Positions 1,785 through 57,865 of a stretch of DNA of 64,000 nt are shown here, piece by piece. The stretch lies in contig CBFFRP010000312.1 of the NCBI GenBank assembly GCA_965644295.1, positions 1 through 64,000 on the forward strand, given 5' to 3'. The position numbers and the translations under genes are program-made. The stretch comes from Paraphysomonas bandaiensis (Eukaryota; Protista; Chrysophyceae). How positions within the stretch are numbered: position 1 is the first letter of the stretch; each line of letters begins with the position of its first letter. The notes beneath the pieces are model-generated. The model was not told the DNA's origin, did no database searches, and saw only the letters and a program-made list of their open reading frames with translations.

Positions 1785-3049
1785 AATGGCAACTAACCCG
1801 AATATTATTAAAGGCAAGGTGCAAGGAAGTTGATAGTGACAGTAATAATCAAAGCGTTGGGAGTATAGTGCATATGATTATAGTGGCGGATTGCTGTCAA
1901 ATCAGCACTTGAATTTCGCCACATACGTACATGCGTATGTTATGTTCCATAAAAAATTCGTAATCCCAGGCTATATATGGCTACATACGGTCGTCAATGT
2001 GAAGTTCGTAGATATATATGGATCTTCAAGAGTTAAACTGAAAATAGGGTCAATGGTTGTATAGAAATAGTAGTGAAAAAATAGCAACCAGATATTCATG
2101 GATTTCACATACGTAATTCCGGGTTAAATACGATGATCATTCGTCGAAAATCGAATCTCCAATATTGACATACGCACACATACAGTCGCTCACAATGGTT
2201 ACGTACGAAGTATCTTTGATAATCAAAAATAAAACCAGGGGTTTTGAGGTCTATAAATAGGAATATCTATAGATATATACTCTGTATATACTGTCAGTGC
2301 GTCAAGTGGGATATTATGGAGGTGGAGAGTTCGAATAGTTGTCATTCTCACTGCCGTGTATGGGGAAGAGTGTGTGTTGAACAATTGCGTGAGGGAATAC
2401 CATACCTATATTAAAAATATGATCTTGCAGCATTGCATATGGCAGATGAGATGCAGGAGTGACGAGAACGATAGTTAGTTAGTGGTTAGATAATTCCCAG
2501 CAGATATATCTGAATCACACTCATCACTCTTGTGGCACTGGGTTCGGGTGTATGGATGTATGATGAGGGGCAATTTCGATATCGTGAGATTTATTTATGT
2601 TTGTGAATATTACTGTGAGCGAATACTTTAAAAATAGCCGAACAATATACAGACTCTATGGGTATGTATGGTGACACCTATATTCCTTGAGAATCAACAT
2701 GCAATTATTTGATTAAGCTTGTATATTAAGAATGGTGCATTAAGAATGTTGTATGATATAACTAATAAGTGGCTGGGATCTAGCAGGGCTTGGTAACGAT
2801 ATGTTAAATAGTATACTTCTATACTACAAGTACTATAGTAATAGATTTATACTTTCAACAATATACTGGCAATATGATATGAGTTACAATACGTTAGCAT
2901 ACAACACGTTACAATACAAATCATATACTGCATATATTAGGTCTTGTGGTACTGATGAAATTATTGATACTCCTACTGAGTTCAATTTTTTATCGATTCT
3001 ATTAAACTTAAATACGGCTCAACTGCCATTTTTAGTTTGTGTTAAAGTC

Positions 3050-3345
3050 TTATTAATAATAACCAGCATCAGATAAGTAGTTAGCTAATTTGGTCAAGCT
3101 AGATCGACCGCTACCTGCAACTAACTAGCACAAATTCTCATATCCTACTATATATTGAAAGTCTTCTTATTAGCGATAGTAGCTAGATAGCTAAACGCTA
3201 AACGCTAGACAAACTAGTTAGACCTCTACCTGTAACTAATCAGTACACACTTTTTTTATCCTACTATTTAACGCTACGGAAGCTGCTTGTGCGTCGCCAC
3301 AAGCACCAAGATGCGACCACTTCCGCTCTGAGTTCTTAAGGTGAA
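3050..3345 (-). mobile_element. 3' tail fragment of non-LTR retrotransposon family
   Basis: The reverse complement of ~3200-3345 aligns closely with 15720-15846, which lies downstream of the RNase H-bearing element. A partial second copy of the tail is at ~3090-3155. Confidence 0.65.
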
Positions 3346-3929
3346 CATCCCGGATGCTTGACTTCAGCAGGCAGCCCAATACCCCGGTTACCCTTCATGT
3401 GGGCTCATCCCGGATGCCTGTTTTTTCGTCAGGGCCCAAAGACGTCTACACAAGTGACACTTATTGGTGTCCCTTGTACCACAAAAGCATTCGGCTATGA
3501 GTGGGCAGAAGAATATCTGCTGACTATGTTTGCGGCTCACGTTAGTTTCCCAGAGAGAATCTCTCCGGTACTTATCCCTCCAGAACACCACGAAAAGGTG
3601 CGATGTATGTTGCATTGGTTCTACTTCACCTGCTATGACCTCATGCCTCTGTAATATATATCGTATGTATGTATGTGTGTGCAGTATGTAACATCGTGTC
3701 GTCATACTGTGAAAGTAGAAAGTAGAAAGAGAGGAAGAAATATTGTCCCAATCAATTGTGTAGAGATATAACGGATAGAAAATCACAAGACCATGACTTT
3801 ATAACAAAGTGAATAGATACATCAATGATTGCTTAGTGTTACACGTGCGGGACAAATTTAAAAGCAATATACGATTATAAGCAAGCACATACAGAACGAA
3901 ATATAAAAGTAACAGAGTATATAAGAAAG

Positions 3930-17444: not shown

Positions 17445-18335
17445 CTAGTAGTCCTCAAAGTCTTCGTCAATACCAGACATAGGAGGGAGATAGGAATTTC
17501 GTGAAGGTTGCGAGGGGTGATACTCCATAGATGTCCCTTTCGATTCGTCATAGTATATATTGCAGTCTCTTGGCTTCGTCCACTCTCTGCGGCAGTATCT
17601 GTTGCATACATGTCTACCAAAAAAAGTACTGATACCAGCTGCGCCTAAATCTGTTGGTCCAAATCTTTGGTTTCTTGAGCATATTACCGGATCTGAAAGA
17701 ATTACCCCATCCCTATAGATACCACCTTGTAAATCACACAACGTAAACATTCCGCTCGATACGTGATACGTGTAGTGCGAGAGTGCTTGTAAAACCTTAT
17801 ACCAACCTCCTTGCCTTCGGTTCACCCAACCACTGTTGCTGTTGAACTTTTCATAGTTTTCGATAAAAGGTTCCACGAACATCTGCCTCCCGTCTGTAGT
17901 CCATTTTGATGGTACATTGATGCGAATTGTACTGTCAATGAAATTGGCACCATTAAATTGGGAAATAAGATGCACTGCCTTGTTGATAGTTTCTTCATCT
18001 TTAGCAAAATATAAATCAGACATATGTTCATACTTATCCTTAAACACTTTCGCTATTGCTGATTGTCCAGTTCGTGGTCCTCCTGTATACACACCGCGAT
18101 AACATGCACGAAAAGATCCAGTTGCAAACACCCGACAAAAATCAAACTGGGCTCTTCGAGAATTTTCATTCGATCTGCCAGTTCCAAAACCACACCCATC
18201 TCGACTCACATTTTCTTGAATGCAGAGTTTGCATCGAGATACTCCAACTTGTTTACGCCATTGATTTACTGAATAACACTCTGATGCTAACTCCGAGTTA
18301 CACCCTGCGCATACACGATATCCCCACTGCGACAT
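17445..18335 (-). CDS. Alpha-kinase (MHCK/eEF2K family) with N-terminal CxxC...CxxC zinc finger
   Basis: Motifs GSFRACY, EPFI..YEKFNSNSGW, LQALSHYTYH, CDLQG, SDPVI, GPTDLG and HVCNRYC. N-terminus CAGC...YSVNQW...RCKLC. Intronless. Confidence 0.92.
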   Translation of the reverse strand: MSQWGYRVCAGCNSELASECYSVNQWRKQVGVSRCKLCIQENVSRDGCGFGTGRSNENSRRAQFDFCRVFATGSFRACYRGVYTGGPRTGQSAIAKVFKDKYEHMSDLYFAKDEETINKAVHLISQFNGANFIDSTIRINVPSKWTTDGRQMFVEPFIENYEKFNSNSGWVNRRQGGWYKVLQALSHYTYHVSSGMFTLCDLQGGIYRDGVILSDPVICSRNQRFGPTDLGAAGISTFFGRHVCNRYCRREWTKPRDCNIYYDESKGTSMEYHPSQPSRNSYLPPMSGIDEDFEDY

Positions 18336-20146: not shown

Positions 20147-20596
20147 TGCTCTATGATAATGTTGTATTATCTGTTATCTGTGAGAATCAGCAACAATGTA
20201 TCTCTCTCAAACCTCAAACTGTTCAGCACCAGTAATATAGATATACAGATGTGTATAGGTAGTTGATTAGTTTACTAGTTTAAAGTCGCAGTTGTGATTG
20301 TCACGAGAAAACTCGATTCGATAAAGAGACAATTGTTTTCCACAAATCCTATCGATGGAATTCTAGTATTGTTGTGCCGTGAATACTTTAACAAACTCAG
20401 GATAATATTAGAAAGTAAAACGGATGTAGATTCAAGATAGAACTAGTTTACTCAAAATAAAAAATACATATCATATGTACATAACATTCTTAATATGTTA
20501 CTTTTACAAAAAGACAACTTTACATGCAACTATTTCTGAGAGATACCTACAAAATACCCTCAGCATGAAAAATTATGACAACCTGATATTCTTACT

Positions 20597-23500
20597 TCAT
20601 ACCCTGACATTACCAATCCATATTACGCGACCATTGCTCTCAAAGGATGGTCGCGTAACCAAAACATCAGCCAAAACTGAAACTTCACGCTGCATCGGTG
20701 GCTGATTGTCGCAACAACTGCTAGACAGTATAGTGGTAAAAAGGCTAGACGGTAGTAAGAACCCCGATTGGCCGTTAATCCTGGCGCTGATTTCAGTAAG
20801 CCCGGACCGCGATTCAACCGGTATATAAGGGAAGGAGATTTGGGCGGACTGTATTCGCGTTCGAGCACAACTTTCTGTGCACTTATCAAACCTTTTATAA
20901 ATATCACAGCCGTTGCGCAGAGCGGCTATTCTTCGCGAACAACTGTCTAAAGCTGAATTCCAGCCGTCCGAACAAGATATGTTAAATTCCGGTATGAGAT
21001 CAACGACAGTATGTTCGGATCTTGTCATGGATAGGATATCATGCTTTGCATCATACGACTTCACATGAGCAAATCGAATCCGGACATAGTTTCCTTCTTC
21101 GAGCCATGGTACCAATTTAGATTCACCCAATACACAATCAGGCAGGGCATAGTGAAACATTACGGTAGTAAAACAATTATCGATTGCGTACACTTCAATG
21201 CCAGACGGGCCCGAGTTGTAAGGATGGCGCACTAGCCTCCATCCCACTACTACGCAGTCCAATGACTTGTCACCCATTGGAAAAGATGAAGAAGCTGTAA
21301 CCAAGGGGTATGAATCAATACTTGATTGTGATGGATGAACTTGCGATGATTTCGTCGATATAACCTTAGTAATAGAATGTGCACCTGCAGTTTCCAATAA
21401 AACTCTTCCTCCAAAATTTCTTGCTATATACTTGAGGTGAGATACCAACACCTCATTTCCAATGGAGAAGCATGTGAGAAAGTCAGCATCGTCAGTTGTG
21501 TCGCTATTAACACGACATCTGATCCAAACATCAGCACCAGATAACACGCACGTACCCAGCACATCAATAAACTGCATTTTTCGACTCTGAAAACCCCGGT
21601 CAAACAGATATGATATGTAGTAGCGCAATGACTCACCATGCTCACTGAATTAGTCTGTTGCGTCCGCAGCATGTTATGCATCATATCTCTTCGAAGGTTT
21701 TGAACTTGAGCATATGTAGATTTAACGGAGGCAATATCATCCTCTCGCAGATCGACATCACGGCCATTATCCATATCCTGTGGTTTAAGTGATAAACACA
21801 TAAGTCATACACAATGTGCTATCTTACAATTATAATATTGCGAATTCTATCAGTGCAGTTTACTTCATTCAATAGGCTAGACAATGATAAAGATTCGTCC
21901 TCCTGCAAGCTTTCCTCGGCGGCATACTTCATCTTCTCCTCCACTCCGACTAACACTTCCAGCTCCCGTCGATTCAGAAAATATACAGAACCTTTCACAT
22001 CGGAAAAAACCTTCGTTGTCGGTGGCGAAACATAGCGGACCTGTATCCGCACAGCAAATATGGGCCCTCCCTCTGCAATAATTTCAGAGATACAGCAATC
22101 GTTTCATATACATAAGACACCTGAGCATAGAGTAGCCACTGATAACCCTCTAGGAAGGGCAGCCGGTCTCACATATCCGAGCTTTGCATCCACTCGCGCT
22201 CTTCGAATACAATTATAAAAGAGTTTCACAGAAGATTTTCCGTGTCCCTCCTCCTCAAAAGTAGCGCCAAAGACGACGATTTTGCAACCGTCATTGAGTT
22301 TTCCCTGAGTACATATCAATTGACTACATATCACAAGCACGAATTATCAGACCGTATGTATCAGCTTGGAAACAATGAGTTCATCGAGCTTTGCTTTGTT
22401 CCACCACCACCCGTCTGATATGCGCACATAGAATCCGTTGTTCTGTAGTGGCTGAATAGATACACATACAACTATCGGCCACACTAAACTGTGAATATCA
22501 ACACATCGTTGGAGCGGAGACATGGCTCCTCGAGTTTTAAATTTAATTTTTTCTCTTTCTTTAGACTCCGTACGCTTCATGTGGGGGGACGTGTACATAT
22601 TAAATCTGTAAGATACTGCAGCACACACATTATCGAATGACAACAACTTCCCAAGATATTTCGTTGGCCATCTCCTCTCGTAGGAGGCTAGGGTCCAAAT
22701 AACCCAGGTCACTTGATACCCTACCCAGTCAATCATTCGCCGAGAAAGACACACAGGAGATATATAATCAGCGATCGCGTATATAAGAGGAGAGGGTTTG
22801 TCATTACCAGGTTCATTGAGCTGTTGATGAATAGATATCTCGTTACCTTGGAAAAATCGAATGTAACCGGCATTGTAGGAGAATATTTTACACAGAGCTT
22901 CAAATCTTTGTGTCTTAAGCAATATCTCATCACATCTAGAAGAGACCTCGCTTGTCATTAGAGCACGTTCTTTATCCTCTGCCAAGCGAATAACGGCTCT
23001 GAGGTCAAAATCCGTCGTTAAGTGCTGATCATTATCAGAAAAGAGAATTTTATTGACATCACGGGGAATACTACGATCACCATCTGCACTATCTCTGGAA
23101 CTACAACTATCCTGGTCCAACTTTTCATGTAGAGATAACGAACAAGATTCACGGTTATTGTCAACACCACTAAATGATTTCACCGATACCAAACCATTTA
23201 ACATATCATCAGAAACACCAACCACAGGACTAATGTGATCACAAACAGGTAACTTTGAACCACCCATAGCAACAACACTAGGTGACGAAGGTTGTACCAT
23301 TGGAGTACTAGAATTCTCACTACTCAATAAGGCATTCGCACGATGCATAGATTCCTCAGATACAGATACACTAGAACCTCCCGCAGTGGAAAACATGGAG
23401 GTTGAACGACGAGGTTCACGACCCGTAGTAACAACACTAGATGACGAAGGTTGTACCATTGGAGTACTAGATCCATACACCAGTGACTTGCTAATACCAT

Positions 23501-26500
23501 CATCACCTTTCTTCTCACTACTCAATAAGGCATTCGCACGATGCATAGATTCCTCAGATACAGATACACTAGAACCTCCCGCAGTGGAAAACATGGAGAT
23601 TGAACGACGAGGTTCACGACCCGTAGTAACAACACTAGATGACGAAGGTTGTACCATTGGAGTACTAGATCCATACACCAGTGACTTGCTAATACCATCA
23701 TCACCTTTCTTCTCACTACTCAATAAGGCATTCGCACGATGCATAGATTCCTCAGATACAGATACACTAGAACCTCCCGCAGTGGAAAACATGGAGGTTG
23801 AACGACGAGGTTCACGACCCGTAGTAACAACACTAGATGACGAAGGTTGTACCATTGGAGTACTAGATCCATACACCAGTGACTTGCTAATACCATCATC
23901 ACCTTTCTTCTCACTACTCAATAAGGCATTCGCACGATGCATAGATTCCTCAGATACAGATACACTAGAACCTCCCGCAGTGGAAAACATGGAGGTTGAA
24001 CGACGAGGTTCACGACCCGTAGTAACAACACTAGATGACGAAGGTTGTACCATTGGAGTACTAGATCCATACACAAGTGACTTGCTAATACCATCATCAC
24101 CTTTCTTCTCACTACTCAATAAGGCATTCGCACGATGCATAGATTCCTCAGATACAGATACACTAGAACCTCCCGCAGTGGAAAACATGGAGGTTGAACG
24201 ACGAGGTTCACGACCCGTAGTAACAACACTAGATGACGAAGGTTGTACCATTGGAGTACTAGATCCATACACCAGTGACTTGCTAATGCCATCATCACCT
24301 TTCTTCTCACTACTCAATAAGGCATTCGCACGATGCATAGATTCCTCAGATACAGATACACTAGAACCTCCCGCAGTGGAAAACATGGAGGTTGAACGAC
24401 GAGGTTCACGACCCGTAGTAACAACACTAGATGACGAAGGTTGTACCATTGGAGTACTAGATCCATACACCAGTGACTTGCTAATACCATCATCACCTTT
24501 CTTCTCACTACTCAATAAGGCATTCGCACGATGCATAGATTCCTCAGATACAGATACACTAGAACCTCCCGCAGTGGAAAACATGGAGGTTGAACGACGA
24601 GGTTCACGACCCGTAGTAACAACACTAGATGACGAAGGTTGTACCATTGGAGTACTAGATCCATACACAAGTGACTTGCTAATACCATCATCACCTTTCT
24701 TCTCACTACTCAATAAGGCATTCGCACGATGCATAGATTCCTCAGATACAGATACACTAGAACCTCCCGCAGTGGAAAACATGGAGGTTGAACGACGAGG
24801 TTCACGACCCGTAGTAACAACACTAGATGACGAAGGTTGTACCATTGGAGTACTAGATCCATACACAAGTGACTTGCTAATACCATCATCACCTTTCTTC
24901 TCACTACTCAATAAGGCATTCGCACGATGCATAGATTCCTCAGATACAGATACACTAGAACCTCCCGCAGTGGAAAACATGGAGGTTGAACGACGAGGTT
25001 CACGACCCGTAGTAACAACACTAGATGACGAAGGTTGTACCATTTGAGTACTAGATCCATACACAAGTGACTTGCTAATACCATCATCACCTTTCTTCTC
25101 ACTACTCAATAAGGCATTCGCACGATGCATAGATTCCTCAGATACAGATACACTAGAACCTCCCGCAGTGGAAAACATGGAGGTTGAACGACGAGGTTCA
25201 CGACCCGTAGTAACAACACTAGATGACGAAGGTTGTACCATTGGAGTACTAGATCCATACACCAGTGACTTGCTAATACCATCATCACCTTTCTTCTCAC
25301 TACTCAATAAAGCATTCGCACGATGCATAGATTCCTCAGATACAGATACACTAGAACCTCCCGCAGTGGAAAACATGGAGGTTGAACGACGAGGTTCACG
25401 ACCCGTAGTAACAACACTAGATGACGAAGGTTGTACCATTGGAGTACTAGATCCATACACCAGTGACTTGCTAACACCATCATCACCTTTCTTCTCACTA
25501 CTCAATAAGGCATTCGCACGATGCATAGATTCCTCAGATACAGATACACTAGAACCTCCCGCAGTGGAAAACATGGAGGTTGAACGACGAGGTTCACGAC
25601 CCGTAGTAACAACACTAGATGACGAAGGTTGTACCATTGGAGTACTAGATCCATACACAAGTGACTTGCTAATACCATCATCACCTTTCTTCTCACTACT
25701 CAATAAGGCATTCGCACGATGCATAGATTCCTCAGATACAGATACACTAGAACCTCCCGCAGTGGAAAACATGGAGGTTGAACGACGAGGTTCACGACCC
25801 GTAGTAACAACACTAGATGACGAAGGTTGTACCATTGGAGTACTAGATCCATACACAAGTGACTTGCTAATACCATCATCACCTTTCTTCTCACTACTCA
25901 ATAAGGCATTCGCACGATGCATAGATTCCTCAGATACAGATACACTAGAACCTCCCGCAGTGGAAAACATGGAGGTTGAACGACGAGGTTCACGACCCGT
26001 AGTAACAACACTAGATGACGAAGGTTGTACCATTGGAGTACTAGATCCATACACCAGTGACTTGCTAATGCCATCATCACCTTTCTTCTCACTACTCAAT
26101 AAGGCATTCGCACGATGCATAGATTCCTCAGATACAGATACACTAGAACCTCCCGCAGTGGAAAACATGGAGGTTGAACGACGAGGTTCACGACCCGTAG
26201 TAACAACACTAGATGACGAAGGTTGTACCATTGGAGTACTAGATCCATACACCAGTGACTTGCTAATACCATCATCACCTTTCTTCTCACTACTCAATAA
26301 GGCATTCGCACGATGCATAGATTCCTCAGATACAGATACACTAGAACCTCCCGCAGTGGAAAACATGGAGGTTGAACGACGAGGTTCACGACCCGTAGTA
26401 ACAACACTAGATGACGAAGGTTGTACCATTGGAGTACTAGATCCATACACCAGTGACTTGCTAATACCATCATCACCTTTCTTCTCACTACTCAATAAGG

Positions 26501-27464
26501 CATTCGCACGATGCATAGATTCCTCAGATACAGATACACTAGAACCTCCCGCAGTGGAAAACATGGAGGTTGAACGACGAGGTTCACGACCCGTAGTAAC
26601 AACACTAGATGACGAAGGTTGTACCATTGGAGTACTAGATCCATACACCAGTGACTTGCTAATACCATCATCACCTTTCTTCTCACTACTCAATAAGGCA
26701 TTCGCACGATGCATAGATTCCTCAGATACTGATACACTAGAACCTCCCGCAGTGGAAAACATGGAGGTTGAACGACGAGGTTCACGACCCGTAGTAACAA
26801 CACTAGATGACGAAGGTTGTACCATTGGAGTACTAGATCCATACACCAGTGACTTGCTAATACCATCATCACCTTTCTTCTCACTACTCAATAAGGCATT
26901 CGCACGATGCATAGATTCCTCAGATACAGATACACTAGAACCTCCCGCAGTGGAAAACATGGAGGTTGAACGACGAGGTTCACGACCCGTAGTAACAACA
27001 CTAGATGACGAAGGTTGTACCATTGGAGTACTAGATCCATACACAAGTGACTTGCTAATACCATCATCACCTTTCTTCTCACTACTCAATAAGGCATTCG
27101 CACGATGCATAGATTCCTCAGATACAGATACACTAGAACCTCCCGCAGTGGAAAACATGGAGGTTGAACGACGAGGTTCACGACCCGTAGTAACAACACT
27201 AGATGACGAAGGTTGTACCATTGGAGTACTAGATCCATACACAAGTGACTTGCTAATACCATCATCACCTTTCTTCTCACTACTCAATAAGGCATTCGCA
27301 CGATGCACATATACATTTCTTGCATGTTTGTATTGCAGTGTTTGTGATGGTTCTGTGTACTGAAAGTCGTCGTTCTGGCTCTCACCTGCGTTCGGATAGT
27401 CTGTTCTCTTTCTCTTTTGATTGATAACTCCTGTTTGAGGTGATAATATATGCTCGTCACACAT
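20597..27464 (-). CDS. BRCA2: BRCA2 ortholog with 20 BRC repeats, helical domain and OB folds; about 5 exons
   Basis: BRC motif MFSTAGGSSVSVSEESMHRANALL occurs 20 times. Helical domain WVGYQVTWVIWTLASYERR. OB1 ISDGWW...GKL..GCKIVVFGA...LFYNCIRRARVDAKLGY...EGG. The large exon 27464-22353 is followed by short introns; the 3' end is uncertain. Confidence 0.92.
23270..27308 (-). repeat. 198-bp coding tandem array (66 aa unit, about 20.4 copies)
   Basis: Exact 198-bp periodicity (20 shadow ORFs at 198-bp spacing) with only a few substitutions among copies. Confidence 0.98.
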
Positions 27465-28520: not shown

Positions 28521-30008
28521 CTAACTATCATTACTATGATCCGGGGTCAATGTAAACCGTGGTGTGTGATTTCCTTTAAAGTTGCCTTTTATTTTGGGAA
28601 GCTTGAAAACTTCGTCCAGCTGCAGGGACGTAGTTGATTTCAAGTATTCGATTGCTTGATGGTATACCTGATGCACGAAATTATTACATTTCCCTAAGAG
28701 CACATCAATATACTTACTTCATGACTGAGACTTTCATTGGTTAAATACTCTGGACTCACGCATATATCGTACCCTACACAAGTATCCCCACTTTTATCAA
28801 GAATCTCATGTGGTGAATTGTTTCCGGTCACCATTTTACCAACAGGAATAGACTCGTGTGTACACATGTTGATAAATACTTTACCACCATCAGAATTCTT
28901 CGTCTTTATAACATTAAACGGGACACCGTCAATGCACTTAATAGCATCACTGGTAGTGTCAGGTCCTAGCCCTTCGCTTGCAGTATCTATTCTCACTGTA
29001 GGTTTATTTTCAGCTGATTCCCCAACTTCAACCTTCGTCTCTAATACAATATTTTCAGCTGATACCCCAACTTCGGCCTTCGTCTCCAATATAACCCCAG
29101 CAGATTCAGTCTCTGTCCCTATCCGATGATCGGACGCTGTCTCTGTTTCAGTGTCTATTTCAGACGAAGTATCTACACTATTAGATGCAATCCCTAACAT
29201 GGCCTCCACGTTAGCCTCTGCATGTTTTCGAGATGACGCATCTTCTTCACCATCTTTTTGTAAGGACTCTAACTTCTCTGCATTTTGTGTTGATGTTGCC
29301 GCTTCTCTTCTAGAGTCGACTTCTAACTCTAACCTAGCAATCTCTTCAGCTTCCGCTCGTACGAGATTCTCGGTGATAATGACAGCGTCTATGTTGGATT
29401 CTTGTACAGATAAGTTCTTTCCGGGCTTCTCTTTGGAAGCCCCAGTAGACCTAAGTTCCTGTTTTTCGCAAGTTGAGGGTGCATTTTTCAGTACAACTCG
29501 TTCTGGCAACTTTACTTTTATAGATAATTCATCCTGTGCAGTAGAAAATATAAGTGCGACATATCGCATAGAAGACATTTCTTACCTGTCCGAAATAACA
29601 ATGGTTACATGCACGCACGTACCCATATTCTCTAAACTCTTTTATTTTTACAGTACCTCGTGAACAGCTATCGCATACTACATCCCCGCACACATGACAG
29701 TGATACTTCCACGTAAAGAAGGAAAACTGTGCAGCACATATCATACAGTTGTCAATATCACTTGCGGCCACCCAGCCAATGAATCGGTAATCTGGGGCGT
29801 GACGAAAACGAACGAACACTCTTCGTAAGTTAATTTTATGTCCATTTACGATGGCATCACTCTTCTTCACTACAACTGCTGGGTTTTCACGAGGATCAAC
29901 TCCAGAGAAGGGATCACTGCTTCTCTCCAATAGCACACAATCATCTAAGCATGGAAGGTTTTCATTTCCTTCAGTGTTATTTCGCAGAGTTTCAATCACT
30001 TCTTCCAT
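28521..30008 (-). CDS. FYVE zinc finger plus acidic linker plus PIH1-N-like domain protein; 3 exons
   Basis: FYVE: WVAASDIDNCMICAAQFSFFTWKYHCHVCGDVVCDSCS...VRACNHCY. PIH1-like: KVFINMCTHESIP...DKSGDTCVGYDICVSP...KLPKIKGNFKG. Introns at ~29585-29535 and ~28718-28668. Confidence 0.8.
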
Positions 30009-52804: not shown

Positions 52805-55800
52805 TTAAGAATCTCTAAACGAGGTAGGATCAGGAAAAGTCAGATCTGGATCACTTTTCATTTGATCCTTTCTCGGTGAATCAGGAACAGCTGATGCCCA
52901 GTGATCTGTTGGATGCACTCGAGATGTCCCTTTAAAAATACTTTCCCCTCCCGGTTTAAAAGAAATAGATGCATCAGGTATATCACATACAGCATCCTTA
53001 TGTTCAGTAAACTGGTGTTTCGCTCCCAGGGGTCTGTATTCACTTGCAGTTGGAGTTTTTTTCTGGGGTCTAGTGACACTTGAAATATCCTCACCGAGTG
53101 CCATTTTCCCATTTCGCCTTACCAGCGGAATACCCAATTTCGTGAAAGCGCTACGTATAGTGTCAGGATTCCCAAATACCAGTACTCGGTCATCTCCATT
53201 AACTGTGGTCTCCACTGGTGGATTAGTGAACACATACGGCAGTATTCCTTCGTTTCTCGGAAGAGGAGTTCGGTATAGCGCAAGAGGAAGCAGCTATAAA
53301 ATTAATAACATTACCACATACTACAGACGTTAGAAACTTACTCCTCGTGAGTTGAGGGCTCTGAACATATCCTTATACTTCCTGCCGAAGAATGTGCTAG
53401 GAATGGGCACATGGTAAAGCATTTGCGTATCCTGTCCGCACACTAATTTTTCACAGAGCTGTGGTGCCACAGTTCCAAAAAAACTCTGCAAACAATATTA
53501 CTTGTGCATTACCCACTACTGTTGAATTCACCTGACACAACATTGAGTCGAAAGAAGAAGGGACAACCGCTCTCCCTGCAGCGAATATTGGCAGAATATG
53601 GTGCGTGTCGTCGACTCCCCAGCAGTTTCCGGTTTGTATCTGTAACAAAATGCATTATCATGAAACTGCGTGACAGATAGATTTCCAACCTTCTGTTGTT
53701 CATTCTTCTTTGTATTAGCTTCAGACCGACTCAATGCGGTCACTGATGACATTCGCATCACTTCAGGACCCTTGCCCTGCCCTTGTCCGTGCACAGGCGA
53801 TGAAGGTGACAGGTGGATCGCAGTGCTCTGTCTGTGTCTACTAAATTTTCCGCTTGTTAGCTGCACAGTACCTTTGTACTTTTCAAAAGCAACTTCGGTC
53901 TTCATTTGACCCAAAAGAACATCTATATTAATGCTATTGCGGAATTTGTAGCTTCCTTTCAAACAGGACGCCAATCCAGTTCCTGCGTCACCCCATAATG
54001 GCCCCTGACTGTTAATGTCACGCTCAATTTTACTCCTTCTCACAATTGCAGAGTTTAACACACCCATATTATTGGGACAAGAGAGCTCAACAGTAAAAAA
54101 AACATCGCGGGGAACAAACCTTTCCATCTTGAGATACATAAATATGGCGTCTGCATCAACATTAAAGGTTTCATCCACATTTATACGCTCTCTGGAGGCA
54201 AGAAGAACAAGGGCATAAGCAGCTCGCACATTCATCAGTGTCAGCTCTTGATTTGATGAAACATTGCTATCCAAGAAAAAGACATCGTCGTATCGACTCT
54301 GAATCTGGCGCCACTTCCTTGGTTCTCCCGGGTTAACGATTAAGATTTGGTGATATGCATCATCAACAACTAACTCCTTTCTTAACTCACTCACAAAAAG
54401 TAAAATATGATCCATACAGCCGAATACAATTACATGCCCGCTGAGATCAGCAGCGTCATCTATTTCTTCAGATGGAACTCCAAATCTCTGTGACGCATTA
54501 ATTTCAGCTGAACCGTCAGCTTCCAAGCTCGGAAACGCAGTATTCAACGACCCTCTACGGCGTCGATTAACCGCAGGCGGTGATCGCATCACCGAAGCGA
54601 CTCGGCGCGCGACGCCCGAACCAACTGGCGCAGATTGTGCATTCGAACTCTGTATGATTTCCCCGGCACCCGACTCACTCCTTCCAAGTGCACTCCTACT
54701 AGGCGATTTCTTCATGGCTTCTGCTGACGCATCATCCTCATGAACGCTGCTTACGCGAGTCGATAAAACTCTTCGTAACTTTCTCTTTTCTTCATTCTCC
54801 GCCTGAAACTTTGATACCAGCGCTGCTATACTCTGAGATTGTTCTATCTGGTCATCAAGTGGAAGTTTCTTGTTTTTACTCTCAAGAGGAGATGAACCCT
54901 TTGGTGGACTTTGACTACTAGTGGGACCATTCATCACTGCCGCCATCCTGGCCATAGACGCAACGTCTTTCATGGATTTTCTTCCTTTCCGTTTGGTCAC
55001 TGAGTTCAATCTTGTTTGTTGTAACGCTGTCATAATACTTGCAGGTTTCGTTGCTGCCGGTATGGACATCGTATCATCTTCACCTGACATCTGTTGAAGA
55101 GCCGCCCTTCGAGCGATAGACGCAAACTTTCCTTTAGCTCCATTTCCTACACTTTCATGCTTCTGAGATTTTACTGCACGAACCAGTGACGCAGCATGCT
55201 TGAGTGACTTAAGTTTGTTCTTTTTAACAATCATATTCTTCATGCTATTCATATTGGTCACCTTTCCTGCCGAAGCTTTCATTTGAAGAACTGCCTTTTT
55301 TGATACTAGCGATAGATCCCTCATATCCCGCATTTGTGGAGTGTCATCATCGTCCAAAAGTTCAAGGATTTCGGAAGTTTCGTTTGGAAGACTCTTGAAA
55401 GAATTATTCCGACTCAATGTTTGATCGGGTGAGAAGCTGTTAAGTTCCCGCGATGAGGTTGGTGTCCTAAAGAGACTTCTATGTGAAGTGGAGCGCGAGC
55501 TTTCTGCGACACTTTGTAGTGAAAACTTCCGTAGCATTTCAGTATCTCTTGAATCTTCAGTACTGGTGGAGTGTGTAGCTACGGCGGCTCCTAACCTAGG
55601 TTGAGGCATAGTCTTTTGGTTCGCAGGATTATCCACATATCCCAAAAAATTCTCATCGTTTTCTTCTGACGAGTCAGTATCAAATCCAGAAATTGTGTCG
55701 TCCCCGCCCCTACTCAGCACGGTATCTCGCTTGCGAGCAGTCGCAAAATCATTTTCTATCCGTCCCTGTGCCTGTCCCATCTGCAAAATGGCTTTCAGGT

Positions 55801-57865
55801 GGTGGGAAAATGAAGACGTCATGCTACTACTCGACACTATGCGGACGAGTTCTGTGGTGGGTTCTGTGTTCACATCTTTATGTTTACGTACAGCAAACTG
55901 GCCCTCTGCCACTACCATATTAGTTAGCATGCGATCCATGAGCACAGTGTCTGTCATTGCGTATCCGATGGCACTCGCAACAGCGTTATTTGGGGCCAGC
56001 AGCACCCCAACATTGAACTTCTTGAAAAAAGCTGGGGCCGAGCTGAATTTCTTTCTTTCATATTGTTTGGGGTTGTAACAAACGCTCTGATCTTCTTCAC
56101 AATATACCCCCACAAGTGTGCATTCAAATTCAAGAAATATAGCCTCCACTAATAAGGGCCAAGAAAATCCTAGCATAGAAAAGAAACTGTGATCGATGGG
56201 AACATAGTATAGCTCCATTCCAACCCCATAGGTGTACTCAGAGAGCCAGTTATCACCAATTTTGTGGGCAGAATATTTCCCGCAAGTAGAAGAGAAGCTG
56301 TGAAAGAGATTTTCCACCAGAGTTGCCAGACCAGGGCAAATAGCATTTCTACACTGTAATGTGGTTTTATATTCGTCCAGACAAAGAACAAAGTCTGCAT
56401 CACTATCCTTGAGTAGGTCACGATCTTGAGACCGTAATACTTGGACAAGACAATCCAGTCTGGTGGTAAAGTTGTTGACAGAAAGGGTCCTTAGGACAGT
56501 GGCTGCATCATCCAACACAGCATCCTCCTCGTCCACCTCCACATTGCTCAGGAAGAACATACCCGAGGCAACATCTGCACGAACTTTCTGTAGGTCTTCC
56601 ATATTTAGTGCAGACCCGATGACATATGAGACCCGACTGTCAAATAGAGGAGAGAAGATCAAGTCCTTCACATCTTCGGTTGGCTCAGTAGGGCAGAGAA
56701 TCACCAGATGTAACTCAGGGGTGTTGGCAGCATACCGGTCAGGGTGGAAAAATTCCCGAAATATGCGTGAGAGCCTCCATTTGTCGTTGACATGTCCACA
56801 GATAATGATATGGCTTTCGTGAGGACGGGCATTATAAGTGGTTCTAAATGGTGAGTTCATGGCGAGAAGGGTCTGAAGCTTGTTTATTTGCATCGGGATT
56901 ACAATTAAGGCGGTTACAATTAGCATTAAAGTTGCTACTCTTGACGCATCATTGGTTGGCATGAAGTCACCGTAACCCACAACTGATATCGTCACAACTA
57001 CAAAGTAGAGACCTTCGAAGAAACCCAAAGACCGACAACGAATCTTGGATGGCTCGTGCTGCCTGTCGTGAATATCATGCAGTGCGTAGCAGTTTTTTTC
57101 CTTGCAATCACACGTTGGGTCATTATAAGAAGAGAAGTCAGCATCACACGATGGTTCATAGTTTGTCTTCTTGCTGATGTATTGGCAGTCATAATGTAGT
57201 TCATTTACGTCATTTTCGGTGAGGTTGATTATTCCAGCAGCAACAAATGTTAGACTTACTAGAGCCAACATGAGGGTAACAAGCTGTCTCTTCACGCCAC
57301 TGAAACCACCTAACAGCCGAAATATTCGCAATATTCTAATCAATCGAAGTATTGTTACAAATCTAAGCCAAGATACATTTGGAACATGCGGAATGTACAT
57401 CAAATATGTCGGTAAAATTGTAACTATATCAATCCATGCGATTGCTGATTTAAAAAATGTGACAGTACTGCTTGAAATGAACCAATTCAAAAGAAAGTCG
57501 ACCAGAAAAAACTGCGTTATGACATCTTCAATAATGACATAAACCTGAATCGAATAATACGAATCTTGGTATCTCTCAGCCACATATATCGCACAGGCAA
57601 GCAGCGATAAAGCCACTTGCAATAAATCCCAAAACTTTCCGATCGGTGAGTTATATTTTACAGATAAGAGGTATTTTCTGATCAACGATAAATCTAAGCA
57701 TCCGCCATCATCAGTGAGTGCAGGCCACCACCCACTGCACCTCTCCTTCTCGACCTCATCAGGTCCACGCATTGACTGCGATCTTATTGAGAAGTTTGTT
57801 TGTGATTTCCCCACCACTCCCAGTTGATATGAATTCATGTTCGCGGCTTTACGTTTTGTTGACAT
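52805..57865 (-). CDS. Slo/BK-like (Ca2+-activated) potassium channel with two RCK domains; 4 exons
   Basis: S1-S6 with S4 LRFVTILRLIRILRIFR, pore TISVVGYGD, RCK1 HIIICGH...GSALNMEDLQKV, CPGLATLVENL, RCK2 GHVIVFG and PIFAAG. Confidence 0.93.

Follow-up and report, generated by a model that had tools for sequence, protein, structure and literature searches.

A near-uniform tandem array of 20 assembled BRC repeats in the BRCA2 orthologue of Paraphysomonas bandaiensis

RESULTS

The window carries one BRCA2 gene with an array of near-identical BRC repeats

We analyzed a stretch of 64,000 nucleotides (nt) from the free-living stramenopile Paraphysomonas bandaiensis (GenBank assembly GCA_965644295.1, contig CBFFRP010000312.1, positions 1 to 64,000; the window in the following), whose minus strand carries a BRCA2 gene with a long tandem array of BRC repeats. 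The array sits in a minus-strand open reading frame (ORF) of 1705 codons (22347-27464). Tandem Repeats Finder (TRF) reported a single array (23314-27307; period 198, 20.2 copies, 99% matches, 0% indels, score 7883), in which each 198-bp segment encodes a BRC repeat of 35 amino acids (aa) and a serine-rich linker of 31 aa. The motif FSTA, an instance of the FxxA module, occurs exactly 20 times at a spacing of 66 residues, while ALLSSE occurs 21 times, with a half-motif before the first FSTA as the additional copy. The BRC motif straddles the unit boundaries, with …MFSTAGGSSVSVSEESM closing one unit and HRANALLSSE… opening the next. At the far end of the array, the first 10 residues of a degenerate 21st unit (HRANALLSSE) finish BRC 20, and are followed by a shortened, diverged linker (NSSTPMVQPSSPSVVAMGG…) and no further FxxA. 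The reading frame is unbroken through all 3960 bp of the array.

An earlier note on this stretch, written from its letters, had described a BRCA2 with 20 copies of a 66-aa unit, each with FSTA and LLSSE, at 23270-27308. This description is essentially right according to TRF, the in-register cut and the translation, with copies as counted in the assembly, and the BRCA2 identity is borne out by the 20 BRCs, OB1, a weakly matched helical domain, and a tail of tandem OB folds in a single-copy, spliced, and expressed gene (Table 1).

The array is highly uniform at the nucleotide level. Each unit lies 0 to 2 bases from the consensus, with an average of 0.8 changes per unit, and the mean pairwise difference among the 20 units is 1.19 per 198 nt (0.60%). 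Seven positions of the unit vary, four of them synonymously (two singletons and two recurrent variants, found in eight units and in two units) and three nonsynonymously. The latter (I>V, P>Q, and T>I) are all singletons that lie outside the FSTA…LLSSE BRC core; at the protein level, 17 of the 20 units are identical and three carry one substitution each. Sorting the units by nucleotide sequence gives the order AABCCCDAAEFGAACDACHC, which is not periodic and in which 13 of the 20 units bear marker variants. The block C-D-A reappears nine units away, a recurrence that block duplication or unequal exchange would give. The longest exact duplicate within the array spans 791 nt.

TABLE 1 Positions of the BRCA2 gene, its exons and introns, and the parts of its BRC array in the window
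Feature	Position	Strand	Description
BRCA2-orthologue gene	20597..27464	minus	5 exons, 4 introns; 6672 nt coding including stop, ~2223 codons
Exon 1	22353..27464	minus	1704 codons; from translation and Pfam; donor at 22352 confirmed by RNA contig joint 22303/22352
Start of repeat homology, upstream of unit 1 (bounds approximate)	27306..27326	minus	BRC tail …VYVHRANALLSSE, no preceding FxxA
Array	23346-27305	minus	20 complete 198-bp/66-aa units, head to tail; each unit HRANALLSSEKKGDDGISKSLVYGSSTPMVQPSSSSVVTTGREPRRSTSMFSTAGGSSVSVSEESM
Degenerate 21st unit	23148..23345	minus	121/198 bases off consensus in register
Intron 1	22305..22352	minus	48 nt, GT..AG; splits OB1; X8 joint 22303-22352
Exon 2	22121..22304	minus	184 nt; C-terminal half of OB1
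Intron 2	22073..22120	minus	48 nt, GT..AG; X8 joint 22072-22121
Exon 3	21828..22072	minus	245 nt
Intron 3	21778..21827	minus	50 nt, GT..AG; X8 joint 21776-21827
Exon 4	21637..21777	minus	141 nt
Intron 4	21587..21636	minus	50 nt, GT..AG; joint 21586-21637 in X8 and X14
Exon 5	20597..21586	minus	329 codons plus stop; tandem OB-fold tail, OB2/OB3-like (fold level)

The repeat unit is a BRC repeat with a variant second module

Pfam family PF00634 (BRCA2 repeat) recognized 20 stretches in the ORF (240.4 bits in total, E = 4.4e-73), each of which scored 22.3 to 22.5 bits against a cutoff of 20.3. A single 51-aa unit found no match among the PDB sequences by sequence alone. A profile in which the unit of the window was aligned with BRCs of 13 other proteins (14 sequences) matched BRC4 of the BRC4-RAD51 crystal structure 1N0W (E = 7e-9). 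In this register, FSTA falls on FHTA and V-S-V-S-E-E-S-M on V-K-I-A-K-E-S-L; in the second module, L-L falls on L-F and S-S on D-E, and an E follows. At the level of sequence, the FxxA module of the unit is canonical, and the second RAD51-contact module appears to keep its hydrophobic pair, with the acidic pair replaced or shifted by one. Since BRCs of a like flavor (…VSVSEEAM…FLDSS) are found in the BRCA2 of the diatom Cylindrotheca closterium, LLSS seems to be a variant of the lineage and not a sign of decay. The 66-residue unit contains 18 serines (27%), one TP site, and an RRST site directly before FSTA; a regulatory role for the latter two sites would be speculation.

Gene structure and downstream domains

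The gene probably starts at the ATG at 27464, because this is the first ATG of the open frame and the next upstream ORF is a separate PIH1-domain gene. The latter (28694-29578, minus strand) is the immediate upstream neighbor of BRCA2, shares its strand, and itself contains a 45-bp tandem repeat of 1.9 copies (29005-29091). Exon 1 opens with a 53-aa N terminus that contains a basic patch (KRKR). The BRC array and a low-complexity spacer of ~200 aa come next, and the exon closes with the weakly matched helical domain and the beginning of OB1.

We searched the spliced model exon by exon. The helical domain (PF09169) at the tail of exon 1 reaches 21.0 bits against a cutoff of 25, over the last 45 profile positions only; the same segment can be aligned to Cylindrotheca and many other BRCA2s in their helical/OB1 region. 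With intron 1 bridged, OB1 (PF09103) reaches 30.1 bits (cutoff, 25.6), and exon 2 alone gives 25.5 bits. Exon 5 had no Pfam match and no BLASTP similarity to Cylindrotheca. It is conserved with an ORF downstream of the BRCA2 of the closest relative (E = 2e-12), and counterparts were found after OB1 in 10 other BRCA2-like matches. An AlphaFold model of exon 5, built from the alignment of these relatives, is a beta-rich tandem OB with a predicted local distance difference test score of 69.7. With this model, Foldseek retrieved the BRCA2-DSS1 structures 1MIU, 1MJE, and 1IYJ (E = 6e-7 to 6e-6) at low template modeling scores (0.29), and the matches also took in the tandem-OB binders of single-stranded DNA RPA, CST, and HIN. 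The exon 5 model supports further OB folds (OB2/OB3-like) at the fold level only. No other locus with BRC or OB1 was detected in the genome (62.6 Mb, 669 contigs), and a second BRCA2 paralogue was rejected on the ground that there is only one such locus.

The gene is spliced and probably transcribed with its array

The region 20500-23545, which holds one repeat unit together with the unique sequence of exon 1 and the exons 3' of it, was compared with Logan contigs of four public runs. Run X8, of RNA type, comes from a sister strain with ~0.7% divergence; the RNA nature of this run and of X17 is presumed. X8 yielded a contig of 2668 nt from which all four introns are absent, with borders exactly as predicted, and which ends at 23343, the edge of the array. 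X14, a poly-A metatranscriptome run, likewise shows intron 4 spliced out. Array contigs of X8 have a depth of 825 to 873, compared with 157 for the unique part, and in X17 a contig of 228 nt closes on itself after 198 nt. Array words are thus deeper than the flanks in these contig sets of presumed RNA, which indicates that the BRCA2 gene is expressed and that its array is retained in the transcript. Removal of the array by splicing, which the earlier note had named as an outcome that would overturn its proposal, is the opposite of what these contigs show.

Two long ORFs on the plus strand lie within the array (23386-25047, 553 aa, and 25072-27363, 763 aa). They exist only because the repeat unit is without stops in that frame, and were rejected as genes because all RNA joints are CT..AC, that is, introns of the minus strand.

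Sequencing data that bear on the copy number

Run X1 holds DNA of the same organism, and its sole departures from the window are 1-nt deletions in the homopolymers T6, G6, and A4 (window positions 22547, 22583, and 22257), where the version of the window keeps the frame and agrees with the RNA-derived contig. Because of this error pattern, X1 is probably a noisy long-read run, so that the assembly probably drew on reads that exceed the 4-kb array in length. The 791-nt internal duplicate likewise implies that only long reads could yield the layout observed. The summed depth of the array in X1 is 1872 to 3414, compared with 28 for unique sequence (66-120x); we rejected this sum as a measure of copy number, since overlapping short contigs, split by error bubbles, inflate it.

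Homogenized BRC arrays recur in other BRCA2 proteins

With one unit and the tail of exon 1 as the query, an exhaustive HMMER search retrieved 203 BRCA2-type relatives (E ≤ 1e-3). Their BRCs were counted with a hidden Markov model iterated on the best 150 of the 203, and some counts were checked with Pfam. No sequence in this search was more than 47% identical, and the protein of the species itself is therefore not in the searched library. The helical/OB1 part of exon 1, when used as the query of a word-index protein search, gave no match, probably because full-length relatives are missing from that index or fall outside its length window, and a scan of metagenome contigs for the relatives' loci returned nothing.

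The closest relatives by DNA-binding domain are marine metagenome sequences that are 37-47% identical and have 0 to 8 BRCs, most of them ORF fragments. One of these relatives, P0001, has 8 dispersed BRCs, three of which are identical. A tandem-repeat search of the locus of the closest relative (L015) found none, so its 8 BRCs are not an array at the DNA level. Related reads turn up in seawater metagenomes and metatranscriptomes. In a quick and weakly supported tree of the helical/OB1 region, BRCA2s fall into two well-separated clades: the window groups with marine metagenome sequences, and Cylindrotheca stands in the other major clade together with animal BRCA2s, a placement that may possibly reflect rate differences or long-branch effects.

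Large BRC arrays were found in eight named species: Macrosteles quadrilineatus (XP_054276692.1; 25 BRCs at a 33-aa period), Diploptera punctata (KAJ9574868.1; 21 BRCs, 45-aa period), Ischnura elegans (XP_046391019.1; 20 BRCs in ten 116-aa double units), Cylindrotheca closterium (CAJ1940483.1, P0059; 19 BRCs in 169-aa triple units), Carpediemonas membranifera (KAG9395034.1, P0062; 17 BRCs in near-identical 33-aa units), Dryococelus australis (KAJ8876964.1; 17 BRCs at 37-aa spacing), Cephus cinctus (XP_015598323.1; 12 BRCs, part of them at 56-aa spacing), and the barnacle Amphibalanus amphitrite (XP_043225533.1; 10 BRCs, part of them at 46-aa spacing). Two metagenome proteins, P0054 and P0065, have 11 BRCs at 51-aa spacing and 10 BRCs at 62-aa spacing, respectively. 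The array of the window is the most uniform of those retrieved (mean BRC identity of 0.98) and ties for third to fifth place in number. Like it, the Carpediemonas and arthropod BRCA2 homologues hold tandem homogenized arrays of 10 to 25 copies; they differ from it in unit length and linker, and most are less uniform (mean BRC identity of 0.61 to 0.95 versus 0.98).

Judged from these sequences, twenty homogeneous BRCs are not unique, and because unit lengths differ among the arrays, the expansions appear to be many and independent. The premise of the earlier note, that homogeneous expansions are known mainly from Trypanosoma brucei, does not hold in this respect: it fits the papers that we found, but is contradicted by the sequence databases, which contain homogenized arrays of 10 to 25 BRCs in insects, a barnacle, Carpediemonas, and Cylindrotheca. 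We came across no paper that treats the BRC arrays of stramenopiles and none that surveys BRC array homogenization in general. A survey of the meiotic toolkit lists BRCA2 of diatoms with no remark on repeats (PMC4647503), and changes in BRC repeat number are known in Drosophila yakuba (PMC2882388).

Comparison with known BRCA2 proteins

The closest described counterpart is BRCA2 of T. brucei, for which 15 BRCs were predicted, among them 14 identical 44-aa units with less than one base change per unit; its last copy is degenerate, its alleles carry 5 to 12 units, and sister species have 1 to 3 (PMC2408642). Both arrays consist of strictly head-to-tail, near-identical units that are longer than the 35-aa motif (PMC2408642; PMC3553974), both have a degenerate copy at the C-terminal end, and both are lineage-specific expansions in an otherwise canonical BRCA2 with a DNA-binding domain. 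The unit is 66 aa/198 bp in the window and 44 aa/132 bp in T. brucei, and the 20 units of the assembly compare with 15 predicted and 5 to 12 measured per allele. Unlike T. brucei, the host is a free-living stramenopile without antigenic variation, and the gene has introns. Moreover, copy-number polymorphism and the function of BRC number have been demonstrated in T. brucei. Elsewhere among protists, Trichomonas has 14 BRCs and apicomplexans have 6 to 8 (PMC2408642).

Cylindrotheca CAJ1940483.1 resembles the window in that 18 of its 19 BRCs have a partner at least 90% identical, in having OB1 and a helical domain (in the window a match under the cutoff), and in the flavor of its BRCs (VSVSEEAM…, with LDSS/LLSS in place of LFDE). 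It differs in its 169-aa super-unit of three distinct BRCs (spacing 65+52+52), an N-terminal RanBP2 zinc finger, and a DNA-binding domain only ~27% identical to that of the window. This low identity and the placement in another clade suggest that the two expansions are independent. With human BRCA2, the window shares FxxA followed by a hydrophobic pair ~21 residues on, and the succession of BRCs, helical domain (weakly matched in the window), and OB folds. The human protein, in contrast, has eight dispersed and divergent repeats with distinct RAD51-binding properties and a complete LFDE, as well as PALB2-binding, PhePP, and TR2 regions, which were not found here (no search was aimed at TR2).

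Partner recombinases and genomic surroundings

The genome contains a RAD51-type gene (G000:C559), of which the tested exon prefers human RAD51 over DMC1, and a DMC1-like multi-exon recombinase gene (locus L011, G000:C269:10282-11659, plus strand). Exons of the latter score 79.3 versus 67.8, 56.6 versus 36.1, and 47.7 versus 43.4 bits with the DMC1 and RAD51 models, respectively, and the tested exon scores 69 bits with human DMC1 versus 56.6 bits with RAD51. Its oligomerization motif reads F-R-T-G where DMC1 has F-L-T-A. A survey reported diatoms to be without DMC1 (PMC4647503). The genome analyzed here carries several silicon-transporter genes, and its DMC1-like sequence would make this host either an exception to that lack of DMC1 or the bearer of a RAD51-A2-type paralogue.

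The window has a GC content of ~42%, and the introns of the gene are 48-50 nt long. Elsewhere on its minus strand, a single-exon ORF (17445-18335) has a cysteine-rich N terminus and matches the alpha-kinase domain strongly (PF02816, E = 2.3e-44), and an ORF of 1445 codons (53528-57865) encodes a BK/Slo-type calcium-activated potassium channel with Ion_trans, Slo-like RCK, and BK_channel_a domains.

DISCUSSION

A probable recent rebuilding of the RAD51-binding region

We consider it very probable that the gene described here is a single BRCA2 orthologue whose RAD51-binding region was recently rebuilt when a single 198-bp segment was amplified in tandem. That the expansion is recent, independent, and took place at the DNA level, as the earlier note had proposed, is supported because the units are identical at synonymous sites and because unit and linker are unlike those of any relative; the closest relatives retrieved, most of them ORF fragments, have 0 to 8 BRCs that are not in tandem.

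The FxxA module of BRC repeats mimics the oligomerization motif of RAD51 itself. If the geometry of the BRC4-RAD51 structure 1N0W applies, each FSTA module would capture one RAD51 monomer, and the downstream hydrophobic pair (LL for LF) would dock on a second RAD51 site. One BRCA2 molecule could then hold up to ~20 recombinase monomers, which would be handed to single-stranded DNA held by the OB folds. The array may have arisen, and may be kept uniform, through unequal exchange between sister chromatids or homologues or through replication slippage; under such concerted evolution its copy number is probably polymorphic, as has been measured in T. brucei.

Several points weigh against this reading. 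The count of 20 comes from the assembly, as Logan contigs collapse tandem repeats. Among the domains, the helical domain stays under its Pfam cutoff, the F.PP (PhePP) motif is in none of the exons, and neither a tower domain nor a DSS1 contact was identified, although no search was aimed at DSS1 or TR2. In the unit itself, the acidic D-E of LFDE is missing (LLSS, then E), and affinity or binding mode may differ from those of BRC4, as is reported for a Leishmania BRC (PMC9162458).

Alternative explanations

Two of the alternatives concern what the array is. It could be real while the number 20 is a product of assembly, with clearly fewer or more units in the genome, or with homologues that differ and of which one was picked. 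This we consider rather unlikely. The assembly, which holds only one haplotype, is indeed the sole source of the count, the 791-nt exact duplicate makes anything but long reads ambiguous, and the genome assembly of T. brucei had 15 repeats, of which mapping confirmed 11 per allele (PMC2408642). However, the non-periodic order of the marker variants is not expected from a collapsed or randomly padded assembly, the homopolymer-only differences of X1 point to noisy long reads and thus, probably, to reads that span the array, and the summed depth in X1, while not a copy number, gives no hint of few copies. Alternatively, the units might no longer bind RAD51 and instead be degenerate BRC-like spacers or a phosphoregulated scaffold for another partner. 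The replaced acidic residues, the serine content with its TP and RRST sites beside FSTA, and the failure of a single unit to find a PDB match by sequence would fit such a loss of function, which nevertheless seems very improbable to us: every unit scores above the curated BRC threshold of Pfam, the residues F, T, A, and G, the V-x-V-S-E core, and the hydrophobic pair align with BRC4, and the shared flavor of the Cylindrotheca BRCs speaks for a lineage variant.

The remaining question is whether the number of repeats matters to the organism. The expansion might be a neutral by-product of slippage in a disordered region, tolerated because additional BRCs add no recombination capacity. Homogenized arrays of many unit lengths (33, 37, 45, 51, 56, 62, 66, 116, and 169 aa) occur in unrelated lineages with no common ecology, a diversity that is expected from mutational bias, and in the mouse a single BRC repeat is reported to support viability (PMC12803100). 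Even so, we regard a wholly neutral origin as somewhat unlikely. The frame is intact over 3960 bp, and each of the three amino acid changes occurs in one unit and outside the BRC core, with all variants common to several units being synonymous, although these numbers are small. Furthermore, a lower BRC number is reported to have impaired recombination and RAD51 foci in T. brucei (PMC2408642; PMC3553974), and multiple BRC repeats are reported to give resilience under stress in the mouse (PMC12803100). At the opposite extreme, and in line with the suggestion of the earlier note that recombination may itself tune RAD51/DMC1 loading, BRC copy number could be a fast-mutating, heritable dial on recombination capacity, whose alleles segregate in nature, arise through the same recombination that is under the control of BRCA2, and change the delivery of RAD51 and the DMC1-like recombinase in repair or meiosis; homogenized arrays elsewhere would then reflect recurrent selection and not slippage. 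We hold such a dial to be quite improbable.

Implications for BRC arrays

The amplified BRCA2 array of the window is a further, striking example of a known pattern, the homogeneous BRC array of the T. brucei type. To our knowledge, T. brucei has been the only well-studied natural experiment with identical BRC repeats. Its expansion has been discussed in the light of antigenic variation. Twenty identical units in a free-living host, together with the recurrence of such arrays across eukaryotes, weaken an explanation that is specific to parasites. Judging by the sequences retrieved, the wide recurrence of homogenized BRC arrays appears not to have been described as a general phenomenon. Genes with such arrays are broken or undercounted in short-read assemblies and transcriptomes, as this case shows. 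Why the number of BRCs per BRCA2 ranges from one to many is debated, and recent mouse work takes up this question (PMC12803100). Diatoms can be transformed and would thus offer a second, unrelated system in which to vary the copy number. The recurrence itself points to a general process, mutational or selective, that acts on BRC arrays.

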